The notes beneath the pieces are model-generated. The model made no database searches, was not told the origin of the DNA, and saw only the letters and a program-made list of their open reading frames with translations. The translations under genes and the position numbers were made by a program. DNA of 64,000 bases, from contig CBFFRQ010000013.1 in NCBI GenBank assembly GCA_965644315.1, positions 558,001-622,000 on the forward strand, in the 5' to 3' direction. The stretch's first letter is position 1, and each line of letters begins with the position of its first letter. This document shows positions 37,501 to 44,039 of the stretch, piece by piece. The stretch is from Caecitellus pseudoparvulus (taxonomy: Eukaryota; Protista; Bigyra: Bicosoecida).

Positions 37501-40255
37501 CCCCAGCTTTACCAGCGGGACAGACCATGCCCGCATTAAGGCTGTGCAGGTGCACGTGTTCAGGCTTGCTATTCGCACACTCATGTCCAGCCTGGGGCGG
37601 GGTGGCCTTACCCTGGGAAGCACCTTCATTGATGCGGGTCATCTGTTTCCCACACCACCAGTCACTGTCGCTGTGCGCCAAGGTCCCGGCGGTGCTGTGG
37701 TGAACATGGATATTCGGGGGATTGTGCAGGCGAGGCAAGATGCGCTGGACCTGGCTCTGTTTCACAACGGTGTAGCAGCCGGCCTCCGTGCCGCAGCGAG
37801 GAGCCGACTGCCAGGAGGGCAAGCGGCTTTGCGGTCATGGGTGCGTGCACACCAGCCATCAACTCCCACTGCAGGTCATGGTGGCCTCCTGCTCGGCTTC
37901 GGGCTGCAGGGTCTCCTCTCTTGCCTGCGGCTGCCTGACCTGTTTCAAGTTCTGCGAGAGGGGCATCCTGAAACTAGCATCGGTGCACTTTTGGGCCTAG
38001 CAGCTTCTCACTTTGGCACGGCGAACGCTTCAGTCAGTAAGGCACTGACACTTCACCTCCCACACGCACTACCATCGGGAGCCGCAGATTTCGCCTTGTC
38101 CCCGTCCCTGCAAGCGTCGTCCATTGTTGGTCTTGGGTTGCTGTACGCTGGTACACAGCAGAAACTGGTAGCCGAGTTCGCCCTGCGCGAAGTAACTGCT
38201 TCCCCGGCAGCGGATGCCTTTGCGGATGCACCCCCTGCAAGTCAGCGGTGCGACGAGGCGTACGCGCTAGCTGCTGGTTGGACTCTGGGCATGGTGCATG
38301 CCAGTACACCACGTGTCGCTGGAGGATTGAGTGAGCAGGAAAGAGCTGCTTCAGACAGCTTGCTGCAATCTCTGCTGCCGAGCCTTGCTGGACAAGCCCT
38401 CGCCCAAGCCTCGACTCGTTCAGAAAGTGCCGGCTCGAACGTAGCTGGGCAAGCCAGCCGCCAGCCAGAGGTGTCGCGCGATCTGCGTACGGCCGACCCT
38501 TCTCGTACAGTTCCGGCCTCCGTAACTGCCATTGCGTTGGCGTTTCTTGGCACTCACAGCTCAGCTGCTGCTTCTGCTCTCGCGCTGCCGTCCACACTCT
38601 CAAGGCTTGATGCGCTGCGCCCGGACTACATCCTGATGCGGGTGGCTGCTCGCAGCCTTGTACTGTGGGGATCAGTGGAGCCTTCCGTCGCATGGGTGCT
38701 AAATCAAGTCCCTGGCATCGTGCTCAGTGCTGTTCACGCTGGCCTCGCAAGTGCTCAAGCCAGTGGGGGCACACAAGACTTGCTTGGTCAACTTGCTGCA
38801 TTGATGGCGGGTGGAGAGCAAGCCCAACCACCTTCCAGTAGACCCTCTGATATGACAGGCGCAACTGCCTCCGCGCAGGTTTCTTCAGGGGAGGTGGGCC
38901 TTGAGCATTGTGTTTCTGGAGGAACATCTTCTCCTGCTCGGCACATGCTGCCAGAAAGCGCCTGGCGCGCACTCGACGCACTTGCTGTGAACCAGATTCA
39001 TGTCTCTTGCCTCGCCGGTGCCTGTTGGGCCTTGGGCATGCGGTTCGCGGGTACAATCAATCCCGCTGCAAAGCAGACCTTGCTGCATTTCCTCCGGCTA
39101 TTCTTGGCCATGCAGGCCAGTGGGAGCCCGGCAGCTTTCGACCCTGTTGTGGCTTCTATGGGGGGCGTTGAGGTTCTTGCAAACCCGGGTCAAAACGCAC
39201 TGAACTGCACCACGGCCAGCTTCTTAGCGCCCGATACCCACACACTTACCAACGCCATCTCGACCACTTGCTGCGCTCTAGGCATGGTCATGGCGGGCTC
39301 CATGGATGAGGACTGCCTTCGGACTGTGCTGCTCGTGCGAAAAAGCTGTTCCGAAGTAGTCGCGTCCGGGTCCCACGCAGCGTGCAGCTTGGCACTGGGG
39401 TGGCTGGGGATCGGAGGGGGTCGTGCCTCCTTCCGGCGTGACCCCGCCTCCGTAGGCTGCCTGTGGCTGGCCTCGTTCCCTGCCTGGCCTCGCGACCAGG
39501 CGGATAACTGCCTGCACCACCAAGCATGGCGACACTTGTATGCACTCGCCACACAGCAGCGGACTTTACGCGTACTGAGTGCCAGCACACACAAGGCAGT
39601 GCCTTGCAAAGTGCGGGTGCAATTGCAGCCAGAGGCACGAGCGGAACTGGGCCTGGGCTCATCATTGTCCATGCTCCTGGAGGCTCCCTGCATCCTTCCA
39701 GATCCTTCCCTCATTTCGAGCTTGCAAGCTATGGGTTCTGGATGGCTCGGGCGAGAATGGTCAGCGGCGACAATGCTGTGCCACAGCCGAGAATCAAGGC
39801 TGCCTCATGGGCTCACGGTGTTCGTTCCTGCAGAAGGACCTGCCCCCTGTCGGGAATGGAGTGGACTCAAGGCAGCCCTGAATTGTGCACCAGCCATGCT
39901 CCCAATAGCTCGAAGACTAGTTGCCGCAGTTGCCAAGAACAGCTCCACAGAAGTGGGCCAGTGGTTGCACTCCGTGAATGCGCTTGCGGTGTCGCGCGTG
40001 CGAGCTCTCGCTGTGGCAGCATTGGCTGAGCTGAAACAAGGACTCTCAGGGCACAGCGTCGGAATGCCGCACGCCACTGAACTTGCCCAATGGATCGAGC
40101 CGTGCCTACTCTCAGACCTGCTTTCTTTAGCGACGCCTGGCCAGCTAGAGGACTGGCACACCCTGTCACAGTGGGCTTCTCAGTTGGAGGATCCCAGAGG
40201 CATGCGCATCCACAACTCTGCGCGAAGCGTAGTAGCTTTGGTTGGAGCAGGGTGA
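34554..40255 (+). CDS. APC1: Anaphase-promoting complex subunit 1
   Basis: DRRFEHVAQALQSS, LFHNGVAAGLR, PC repeats (HGGLLLGFGLQG, LGLGLLYAGT-like, ALGMRFAGT, LGMVMAGS) and QAWRHLYALA; intron 34834-34907. Confidence 0.88.
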
Positions 40256-40291: not shown

Positions 40292-43200
40292 CTAGTCTCC
40301 CTCCTCTTCCTCGCACAGCCGCGCAGCAAGTTCCTCGGCGACCTTCGACGCAGTCCAGCGTTCCGCAGGGTCGGCCGCAGTGCAGTTGTGCACAAGGGGC
40401 AAGACCCACTCAGGAGCATCACAGTCTTCCGGGTACTCCAACTTCCAACCCTCCTGGAAGACGTTGTAGTACTTGGCGCTGGGAATGCTTTGCGTGGGAA
40501 TGTTGATGCGGCGGTGAGCATCCCGTGGAGCGAACAACTCGAAAATGAGCACTCCCAGTGAGAAAACATCAGCAGGGTATGAATAGGGATCGCCGTACGC
40601 CACCTCGGGGGCTTTATACCCCATAGTTCCAATCTCAGTCGTTGCAAAGTGCCCAGCGTCTCCCTCCAACACGCGAGAGGTGCCCAAGTCACCCAACTTC
40701 GCCCTGAGTCGGCCCCGTCCCGGGCCAAGCAGCACATTGTGTGACTTGATGTCGCGATGCATCCAATGGTGCCTGTGCAAGTGTGCGACACCTTCGGCAC
40801 AGTCGCAGGCCAGGGCCAGGCGTTGCTTTGTGTCCAGACGCTCAGGGTCCCGCAGCGCACTGAAAACCGTACCTTGCGGCATCAACTCGTATACTATGGC
40901 CAAACCAGGGTATGTACAGGCTCCGATGAGTCGAACGACGTTCTCATGCGGAGGCAGCGCCCTGAAGGCTGCGATTTCAGTCTTGAAATCTGCGAGGAGC
41001 TTTGGTGGCGGCTGTGCGGCAATGTAGTTGAAGCGCTTGACAGCCACCTCCACACCAGGGTCTTCGATAAAGCGTGCCCCACTAGGGGCCAGTCCTTGCT
41101 CTCGGCCGTCGCCACCCTCGCCACTGGCTGCAGCTGCCACAGCCGAGGCAGGCACCGTTGCCTCCTCTGCGGCCGGGGTGACCCACAGTGCCCGATACAC
41201 GGTGGCAGTCTTCCCAGACCCCAGCTCGTTCTTTAGGTGCAGTTCGTTCATGTGCAGTTCTAGGTAGCTCTCTTCTTCCTCAATTTGCGCTGCTTTAGCG
41301 GACAGAGTGGATGCCACCTCTACAGCATCGCCGGCGCTCAAGCTATCGTCGCCGTCAAGCGATGACAGAGCCTCGCTCATCGCGCTGTCATCGCGAGATG
41401 CAGAATCCAGCGCGTCCGTCCAGACCGCTGCAGGCGTCCGTTTCAACTTGGCCCTCCCTCGAGCAAGGGCTGCTGCAAAAGAGCTCGGGGCCTGTCGCAA
41501 AGGTCCCCTTGGTTTCACGTCTTGCTCTTCAAGTGCCGTGCCAGCCTTTGGGACACTGCTTTCGCGAACAGGGGTCTTTCGCAAATGCCCCTTCTTCAGC
41601 TTCTTGACTGCAGACAAAATGTTCTTGTGCTGCGTCCGCATTGCCTCCCTCCGCATGGCTTCAGCTCGCTGCACGTCTTGTTCTCGAGCCTCTTGCACGC
41701 TGCTGATAACAGCTGACATCGTCTCTGACGCAGACTGCTGCCTTCGAAGGGCCCCTGCCCGTGGACTACTTGGTGCAGGACCTGCTGAAGACTCAATTGC
41801 GGATACAAGCACTCGAGGAGTCGAAGAAGGGGGCGACTGCATCGCTGCAGCTACGGGCGATCCTGGCGTGGCCATGTGCTGCACCGCAGGAAAAGCCACT
41901 GGCAGCTCCTCGACATGTTTGCTAGAGGATCTGCGTACTAGAAGACCCCCGTGGGTGTCAGCAGGAGTGGGCAGCAGGTGTGCAACACTTTCATCCACAA
42001 CCTGAACAAACAACGTGTCGCCTTGCTGGGCAAAGTCAACAACGCTCAGTTCATCGTCTGTTACTTCCACAACCAGATCACTGGGACCTTGGGTTGGTGG
42101 CGCGTGGGGGTTGTGCTTGGACTCGGCATGCCAATCCCCGCCAGCAGTTTGAGGGGACGTAAGTACTGAAGTCACCGTCGCCCTGCGAGCAGCATGTCGA
42201 GTATCATCGGAACTCTTCGCGGCAGAGGACCTGGCTGCAGGTCCACCTGACGCTTGGAGGGGCAATGCACTACTGCTGTGGAATCTCCGCAAGGTGAAAA
42301 TGCGTTGACTTGCGGGAGGGATGGACAGCTGTTGCTGGATGTCACGGCGAAGTACCCCAAGTGTGTACCCTTCCGGCACCTCCAGTTGCACACGTCGCAC
42401 CCAAAGCGCTGAAGCAGCGCTTCCCACGCTGTCCCCCCGCTGCAGCCCTTTCGCTGAATCGAGAAGGGCTGCAGCTGGGATCACTTCCAGAGACACTGTC
42501 AAATTGTGCGAGTTCATCACTGGCTTGATACTGGAAAGCACCTCCTTCACTGTCAGCTCTGCCAGAGAGCCGATTGTTAAGTGCACATGGTGTGGAAAGA
42601 ATGAAGACACCGCACGTCGATGGTGGAGCATCGTGCTCACTGACGCCGACGGGGGGTTCCAAGTGATCAACACAAACGCGGCCGTGGCGTCTTTCTTGCT
42701 TGCATAAGTGCTACGAGCCTCTGGGGTAGGGCCTGCTCGTAAGGACTTTGACGCTGCACGGCTTGCAGCCAGAGCCGTGTGCCGTCGCCGTTTGAGGGGC
42801 TCAGATTCCTGCCGAAGGTGTGCTCCCTGCCGCGTCACGTCAGCCGGGGGAGTCGGCTGCACACGGCGGTTGAACCGGAAGTACATGTACACTGGATCAT
42901 CTACATCCTCCCTCGCGAAGGGAAATACCCCTGTTGTCCGCAGTGGGTCTGGCATCAGCGCCGTCAAGGCATCAGCACCAGAGGCAAGCAGCTGCAAAGA
43001 GTTGCCCTCTCTTCCACCGAGCGAGCCCCCTAGCCCAACCACCATCCAATTGATGCAGGAGGTGTGCTTGTGAATGGCGTTGAAGGCATCTTGAACAGCT
43101 GAGTCAGATGTGCCCAAGCTACCTCGAGGAAGCCGGAGACTCCCTCTGCTGCGGCCGCCCCTGCGAGCTTCAGGCGCCGCGGCGTTCGCTGCGGCAGCGG

Positions 43201-44039
43201 CAGTGACAGGCGGGGGAGGGGCCACACGGGTAGTTCGCGAGCTTGCAGCTCCACCGCTTTCTTCATCACGGCATGCCAGGCGGGACTTTACTTCCTGCAC
43301 GGCACCACCTTGTGCGACCAGCTGTGAGCCAACTTTGTCTTGTTGGTGGGTGTGCTTCTCCAGCCAAGCTTCCTGCACCTTCCTCGGAGATATCTCCTCC
43401 ACCGCATGGGTGGTCCAACAATGCGAAATCGAGCACGAATGGGCTGCAGCCGACAATGCAGTCCGTACAGCCAAGCCCCTTGTCATGGCTTGCACAGATG
43501 GTCCACCTCCTACCTGCGCAGGACGGAGGCAAGTGGCCTCTTGCGTAGAGCTTGGATCAAGCCACTTCAAGCCTGCTCGCGCACGTAGGTCACAAGTCCT
43601 CGAATACAACCAGGTCCACGGAGAGACCCTGGCGGTGTCAGCACTTGCAACAGGACTGCGAGTCCGGAACAGAGATTGCAGTGCTTGCCAACGGCGGAGG
43701 GCCTCCAGCGCCAGCAGCACTTACCGTGCTGGACATCGCCAGGGATAATACTGCCTTGTACTTCAGATAGGGCACCAGAAGATGCTTGAATGTCAAGTTT
43801 TCCCACCTGTGGCTTGCAGCAGAGGTTCATTCAACCGAAGGGTGTCCAGGCAGCGTTGCGGTGCTGCGGAGAATGCAGCTGTGAGGGGGCGCACCTCAGG
43901 ACCGCCAATAACTGCGAAAGCATGCGAAGGAGGCTCAGTTGCACCGGTGAAACACGACCCACTGAGCTTACTTACTTGCGAACCCTTCTCCACTCCCTAT
44001 TCTCTCAATTGCGGCACGTAGTACGTGCTCAGCGTCCAT
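40292..44039 (-). CDS. TKL-type protein kinase with two N-terminal ADF-H (coactosin-like) domains, a ubiquitin-like domain and two WH2 motifs
   Basis: Exons 44039-43976, 43911-43895, 43806-43725, 43655-43585 and 43513-40292; all introns GT-AG and phase-compatible (about 1,151 aa). Kinase motifs LGSGKTATVY, VAVK, HRDIKSHNVLL, DLG, GTMGYKAPE, DVFSLG. Confidence 0.85.

Follow-up and report, generated by a model that had tools for sequence, protein, structure and literature searches.

Background

LIMK and TESK are TKL kinases that phosphorylate ADF/cofilin. The free-actin pool is read in cells through RPEL-motif proteins, and pathogens use actin as a cofactor, as is the case for YopO and ExoY. 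To our knowledge, no endogenous kinase with WH2 and ADF-H modules has been described. YopO (YpkA) of Yersinia is reported to be a kinase activated by G-actin that employs actin as bait (PMC5209680). Here we analyse a gene from the bicosoecid Caecitellus pseudoparvulus, found in a stretch of 64,000 nucleotides (nt) that we call the window (GenBank assembly GCA_965644315.1, contig CBFFRQ010000013.1, positions 558,001 to 622,000). The gene lies on the minus strand at 40292-44039 of the window, and its five exons predict a product of 1,151 amino acids (aa). Whereas twinfilin consists of two ADF-H domains and a capping-protein-binding tail in about 350 aa, this much longer protein has a kinase at its C-terminus.

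We consider it fairly likely that the locus is a five-exon gene for a probably active Ser/Thr kinase of TKL/TK-like type with actin-binding N-terminal parts. In order, the protein would consist of an N-terminal domain of about 125 aa, a divergent ADF-H domain with a loop insert, a beta-grasp candidate, a conserved helix, two WH2-like motifs and the kinase.

Gene structure and kinase domain

An initial annotation, made from the sequence alone, had proposed that four small exons are spliced in phase to a long open frame. The coordinates, the ATG, the four introns and their phases all proved correct when checked against the sequence, and the peptides quoted there are present (INWMVVG, YMYFRF, FVLITWNP, AELTVKEV, ILSAVKKLKKGHLRKT, FAAALARGRAKLKRT, HRDIKSHN and DLG). 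Exon 1 (43976-44039, minus strand as all features below unless stated; 64 nt) starts with ATG at 44039 and encodes MDAEHVLRAAIERIGSGEGFA plus one nucleotide. Exon 2 is a micro-exon of 17 nt (43895-43911) that yields IIGGPE, including a split codon. Exon 3 (43725-43806, 82 nt) encodes VGKLDIQASSGALSEVQGSIIPGDVQH and exon 4 (43585-43655, 71 nt) encodes LLQVLTPPGSLRGPGCIRGLVTY. The terminal exon 5 (40292-43513) has 3,222 nt, of which 3,219 are coding and the rest is the stop; its frame is open throughout and gives 1,073 residues. The introns measure 64, 88, 69 and 71 nt, all four of them run from GT to AG, and the phases close.

Comparison with two orthologous loci, L003 and L015, supports this splicing. 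In both of them, small exons of 70, 17, 82 and 71 nt stand upstream of the long frame, with the phases seen here and with GT..AG introns of 52-62 nt. Exons 2-4 are therefore 17, 82 and 71 nt long in all three taxa. Only exon 1 differs, 64 nt here versus 70 nt in the orthologues, where it keeps the same phase, an MDA or MDT start and a GTAAGT donor. The micro-exon lies at 873-889 in L003 (VLAPGE) and at 948-964 in L015 (VVAPGE), and it is flanked by AG and GT in all three taxa; the exon 3 equivalent reads NGKL...VQH in both orthologues. In exon 4, all 14 nucleotide differences between L003 and L015 are silent, and over the five exon pieces 56 changed codons are synonymous and 22 non-synonymous. 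The introns of the same two loci vary in length, and their alignment reaches only some 55-60%. At the level of sequence the upstream exons are under purifying selection, and the five-exon gene model is, in our view, almost certainly real. Methods that predict genes in compact protist genomes could usefully be tried on the conserved micro-exon.

The kinase domain (40328-41242) is matched by Pfam Pkinase (PF00069) with E 2e-36 and 126.2 bits (cut-off 31.7), as well as by PK_Tyr_Ser-Thr (PF07714) with E 1.8e-35 and 122.9 bits (cut-off 23.1). The catalytic set is complete: the beta-3 lysine in AVK, the alpha-C glutamate in FKTEI, HRDIKSHN, GDLGTS and YKAPE; an insert of about 40 aa follows the Gly-rich loop. 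In the orthologue, K, E, HRD, N, DLG and APE are invariant, which bears out the earlier description of an intact-looking kinase with DLG. Replacement of DFG by DLG is common in TKL kinases, for example in TGF-beta receptors, and is no argument against activity. The HRDxKxxN form of the catalytic loop (HRDIKSHN) points to a Ser/Thr enzyme of TKL type. The best matches in the PDB form a mixture of TK (EGFR, Kit, Abl) and TKL (CERK1, CTR1, B-Raf) kinases with E from 1e-19 to 1e-27, and none of the PDB matches indicates special closeness to LIMK or TESK. The enzyme is thus probably an active Ser/Thr kinase of TKL/TK-like type.

WH2-like motifs and the actin model

Two WH2-like motifs, 47 residues apart, are situated about 60-110 residues before the catalytic domain and just upstream of a conserved pre-kinase helix. 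The first (41573-41620) reads ILSAVKKLKKGHLRKT and corresponds to LMSTIKKLKGFKMTKG in L003 and LMNTIKKLKGMKLGKV in L015. The second, WH2-2 (41435-41479), reads FAAALARGRAKLKRT, with VLASQLRLKRASLRKI in L003 and ALASQLRLQRASLRKI in L015. In the orthologue alignment both motifs form gap-free islands within a gapped linker that is 16-20% identical.

The initial annotation had suggested co-folding with actin, and we carried it out for WH2-2. A 34-residue piece around the motif was modelled with P0055, a complete actin (377 aa) whose sequence is identical to the actin exon of this genome. The interface score (ipSAE) of this pair was 0.78, against 0.00 for the best of three controls; 51 of 78 solved complexes attain this mark, as do 2 of 108 mismatched pairs. 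The runs share at least 53% of contacts, and the predicted local distance difference test (pLDDT) of the partner is at least 60. In the model, the peptide occupies the cleft between subdomains 1 and 3 on the barbed face of actin, where it touches residues 145-150, 169-170 and 343-353, and it further contacts residues 26-31. Two leucines serve as anchors: Leu14 packs against 145-150 and 347-351, Leu21 against 26-28 and 343-347. This position is what we take to be the canonical WH2 pose. The model shows likeness to WH2, and binding to actin is on this basis predicted only.

As regards actin itself, two proteins from a JGI metagenome (P0078 and P0079) are ubiquitin-actin fusions of uncultured protists, with PF00240 at the N-terminus and PF00022 behind it, and they are about 90% identical to the organism's actin. 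At 88% identity, an actin from Cafeteria is of no diagnostic value.

ADF-H-like and ubiquitin-like regions

The region annotated as a second ADF-H domain (42509-43108) is composed of an N-terminal half (42860-43108), an insert of about 57 aa (42689-42859) and a C-terminal half (42509-42688); across the orthologues the insert varies from 57 to 90 residues. When the 210-aa segment was compared with Pfam, Cofilin_ADF (PF00241; gathering cut-off 22.4 bits, 125 profile positions) was the sole match, with 20.6 bits and E 3.7e-4, which is below the cut-off. The same family scores 20.0 bits in the orthologue P0002 and 24.6 bits in L015, the latter being the only value above the cut-off. It is also the only Pfam family found on the C-terminal halves of all three orthologues, each time at profile positions 62-124. 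In a low-confidence model, the C-terminal half is predicted to run strand, helix, strand, helix, an order consistent with ADF-H. A search of the ESM Atlas returned no usable match for this domain or for residues 140-425 of P0002.

By eye, all elements of the domain presumably align with cofilin and twinfilin, and we treat this as a lead only. They comprise helix 1 (SD.A...AFN..H), two strands, the LMPDP turn and PVYMYFRFN; FVLITWNPP, a long helix, a strand and the last helix complete the series. It is, in sum, quite probable from its sequence that the domain has the ADF-H fold. That it binds actin in the manner of cofilin we rate lower than the fold itself, and by analogy with GMF, where basic residues of the cofilin type are likewise lacking, a partner such as Arp2/3 is possible. 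An invariant SLRLP stretch follows Arg-rich residues just before this domain (43120-43140, residues ~125-131). Its context is RSRGSLRLP here and RRPVSSLRLP in the orthologues, and it may serve for docking or for phosphorylation by a basophilic kinase.

The N-terminal domain (43376-44039, about 125 aa) spans all five exons and is conserved. Its reading as a first ADF-H domain, also proposed in the annotation, comes from recognition of a pattern by eye and makes it a candidate only. Pfam finds no match on its exon 5 part in any orthologue, and hhalign of this part against the second ADF-H domain, four cofilins and an ADF-H piece from the genome itself (L012) gave nothing significant. A strongly conserved motif, WL.(K/E)H.HQ.D.V, comes directly after the domain.

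A ubiquitin-like (UBL) candidate of beta-grasp type occupies 41966-42409. In line with the proposed split UBL, its two conserved halves, 53-60% identical, flank an insert of about 66 aa that is variable, and the N-terminal block V.RVQLE.PEGYTLG.LR.DI..QL.IP...QR.F.LR.F weakly matches beta-grasp families only. Pfam ubiquitin gives 13 bits and E 0.093 here (cut-off 25.4) and E 0.11 in L015, which also weakly matches UN_NPL4, Ubiquitin_2 and OTU1_UBXL (E 0.06-0.23), and the orthologue profile reaches ubiquitin chains of the PDB at E 0.3-0.8. The AlphaFold model that covers this region together with the second ADF-H domain is of low confidence (pLDDT 31.7). Judging by these matches, a UBL domain is plausible and somewhat favoured.

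We considered that the inserts in the second ADF-H domain and in the UBL might be unspliced introns and reject this, because they are open in frame in all three orthologues and because their length is far above the 52-88 nt of the introns of this gene.

Elsewhere in the genome, a six-frame scan with Cofilin_ADF revealed four ordinary ADF-H loci (contigs C67, C69, C57 and C34). In a six-frame Pfam scan none of these four contains two adjacent ADF-H domains, and the genome may thus be without a canonical twinfilin. The cofilin exon, used as a query for building an ADF-H family, returned only 4 proteins. This exon (L011, G000:C69:738840-739469) is 99% identical to P0003, a GenBank record on a 2.6-kb contig named 'COF1, partial [Symbiodinium sp. 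KB8]', and an MMETSP transcript is 84% identical to it. The Symbiodinium record may represent contamination by this protist or a close relative. At L012 (G000:C57:681213-681380 and downstream), the C-terminal half of an ADF-H domain continues in frame into about 17 tandem EEATPA repeats, an unusual acidic tail.

Orthologues and genomic context

The 740 non-kinase residues were searched against 1.84 billion representative proteins. Only two proteins match: P0001, a metagenomic sequence 99% identical, and the orthologue P0002 of 1,197 aa, which aligns with 47% identity across the full length (MAFFT); outside the orthologues this search set contains no match. A scan of metagenomes added L015 as a third orthologue, whose protein is close to that of P0002; megablast detects no DNA similarity between the two contigs. 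The two metagenomic orthologues are distant, about 45% identical, and have continuous frames of about 1,200 aa. Along the alignment, domain blocks are 35-62% identical and nearly gap-free, while linkers and inserts are 9-20% identical and rich in gaps. This genome has no paralogue of the non-kinase region, and full-text literature searches did not yield a fusion of ADF-H or WH2 to a kinase. The architecture is not found outside this narrow clade by sequence and literature searches, in agreement with the earlier statement that the domain combination is undescribed.

The gene order Nup62 - kinase - APC1 is retained in related contigs. APC1 adjoins P0002 as it does the window gene, and L001 and L003 too have APC1 as a convergent neighbour; upstream, the Gly-rich repeat of the Nup62 neighbour is recognizable on the reverse strand in L003 and L015. 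In the window, the convergent APC1 gene (plus strand) has a stop codon ending at 40255, about 37 bp from the stop codon of the kinase gene (40292-40294). Because of this spacing, the 3' untranslated regions of the two genes must overlap.

Discussion

We propose that the WH2 motifs, and perhaps the ADF-H module too, dock the kinase on actin monomers or on barbed ends of filaments. Such docking would place or gate the kinase at sites of actin turnover, where it would phosphorylate proteins bound to the same actin. Sequence and complex model together suggest that the protein probably binds actin. Our grading of the evidence is good for one WH2-type motif, moderate for one divergent ADF-H domain and weak for the UBL. 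Actual actin binding, control of the kinase activity by actin and the substrates are what we infer from these parts; the coupling of G/F-actin status to phosphorylation, which the initial annotation had raised, would be inference throughout. If the protein does bind actin, it offers a compact system for how cytoskeletal state becomes phosphorylation; it also widens the range of domain combinations in which ADF-H and WH2 occur by a new one.

A stricter idea is that G-actin, bound to the WH2 pair near the N-lobe and to the ADF-H domain, switches the kinase on or off and at the same time baits its substrates. In its favour, the conserved helix and then the catalytic domain follow directly on the WH2 motifs, the model puts WH2-2 into the actin cleft, and a published precedent exists for a kinase that is both activated by actin and baits with it (PMC5209680). 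Allostery is a sharper assumption, however; simple localisation explains the same data, and no sequence relation to YopO is seen. We therefore hold actin gating in this strict sense to be rather doubtful. The broader picture of a eukaryotic G-actin-gated kinase, in which monomers on the WH2 pair and the ADF-H domain would switch a TKL kinase and present actin-bound substrates to it, seems unlikely to us. If it were true, the protein would be an endogenous counterpart of YopO, with phosphorylation as a direct read-out of the free-actin pool.

Another alternative is a generic TKL kinase specific to this lineage. Its N-terminal region would be unconnected with actin, and the likeness to ADF-H and WH2 would be due to chance or convergence. 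A number of observations speak for it and against the docking that we prefer. Firstly, every non-kinase Pfam match in the window sequence is under its cut-off. Pfam WH2 (PF02205) matches neither motif, even in isolated segments at E up to 10. Short motifs, it is true, often escape HMMER filters. In favour of WH2, a regular expression for WH2-like motifs hits these two sites and no others in the long open frames of the 64-kb window (23,704 residues), and it gives two nearby matches in none of 2,000 shuffles, but it was written after the motifs had been seen, so these counts are biased. The complex test has no calibration for peptides, and its high score may reflect solved WH2-actin complexes memorised by the prediction model. 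The basic stretches of the motifs could also be nuclear-localisation or calmodulin-binding motifs, and the KKLKK and KLKR clusters resemble nuclear-localisation signals.

Secondly, the N-terminal half of the second ADF-H domain has no Pfam match, so a match to the whole domain is absent. AlphaFold gave unusable models both for this domain with the UBL (396 aa, 4 sequences, pLDDT 31.7) and for the domain alone (221 aa, 3 sequences, pLDDT 38.3), and the folds are thus unconfirmed. Profiles of the orthologues find no ADF-H chain in the PDB, hhalign aligns the domain with four cofilins over only 10 columns (FVLITWNPP/LVLIKWCPD, E 0.055), and the six-frame Pfam scan of the whole genome did not flag the kinase locus. 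Finally, the residues before the conserved Met-Leu are Ser, Thr, Val and Asn, where cofilin is presumably basic for contact with actin.

Despite these points, we regard an N-terminal region unrelated to actin as unlikely. Cofilin_ADF hits the same profile region in three orthologues, once above the cut-off; WH2-2 scores 0.78 versus 0.00 with canonical contacts; and both WH2-like motifs are conserved islands in a variable linker. Of the earlier claims, the two WH2 motifs thus stand as conserved elements, one of them modelled in the actin cleft, while the Pfam match is missing; the second ADF-H domain is backed in its C-terminal half, near the cut-off, and not in its N-terminal half or by structure prediction. 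A further notion casts the ADF-H-like domain as a substrate or pseudosubstrate within the same chain, just as cofilin is a substrate of LIMK and TESK; it would then be autoinhibitory or serve for docking and would not bind actin. A TKL-like kinase, the seeming loss of basic actin-contact residues and the conserved SLRLP...(T/A)SD stretch before the first helix would fit this notion, yet it is highly improbable, since the kinase resembles EGFR, Kit, CERK1, CTR1 and Abl best and not LIMK or TESK in particular, and since it leaves the WH2 motifs unexplained.

Comparison with known systems

With an actin-docked kinase as the favoured reading, the protein can be set beside several described families. 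It shares with twinfilin possible tandem ADF-H-like modules, the Cofilin_ADF match in the C-terminal half and a pattern of strands and helices that looks similar by eye. In contrast to twinfilin, it adds the UBL-like domain, the WH2 motifs and the kinase, and its second ADF-H domain carries the insert of 57-90 aa and has no basic residues before Met-Leu; only one ADF-H domain is supported by a profile, and no twinfilin tail is seen. The protein is not a member of the twinfilin family, and the term 'twinfilin-like' used at first reflects a reading by eye.

LIMK and TESK are similar in that their kinase domain, too, is TKL-like and in that they are connected with the ADF-H/actin system. Here, however, LIM and PDZ domains are lacking, the ADF-H domain resides in the same chain as the kinase, and many TK/TKL kinases are at least as close to the latter as LIMK is. 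Class III myosins likewise unite a kinase and actin-binding elements in one polypeptide, but theirs are a motor domain with tail motifs and an N-terminal STE20-like kinase, and homology does not extend beyond the kinase fold.

With the WH2 proteins (WASP/WIP, thymosin beta-4, Spire, Cobl) the motifs have in common an amphipathic helix followed by an LKKT/V-like motif, and their tandem layout, here with 47 residues between them, recalls Spire and Cobl. Unlike those proteins, ours escapes Pfam WH2, has linkers 1-2 residues above the textbook spacing and joins the motifs to a kinase.

YopO is an injected bacterial effector whose kinase and GDI domains bind actin; it has neither WH2 nor ADF-H and shows no sequence relation to the protein described here. 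Among the papers listed by the literature searches it is the nearest analogue, a functional one, in that a kinase is physically joined to monomeric actin. Set against all of these systems, the protein combines known parts in a new way, as a multi-domain kinase restricted to one lineage.

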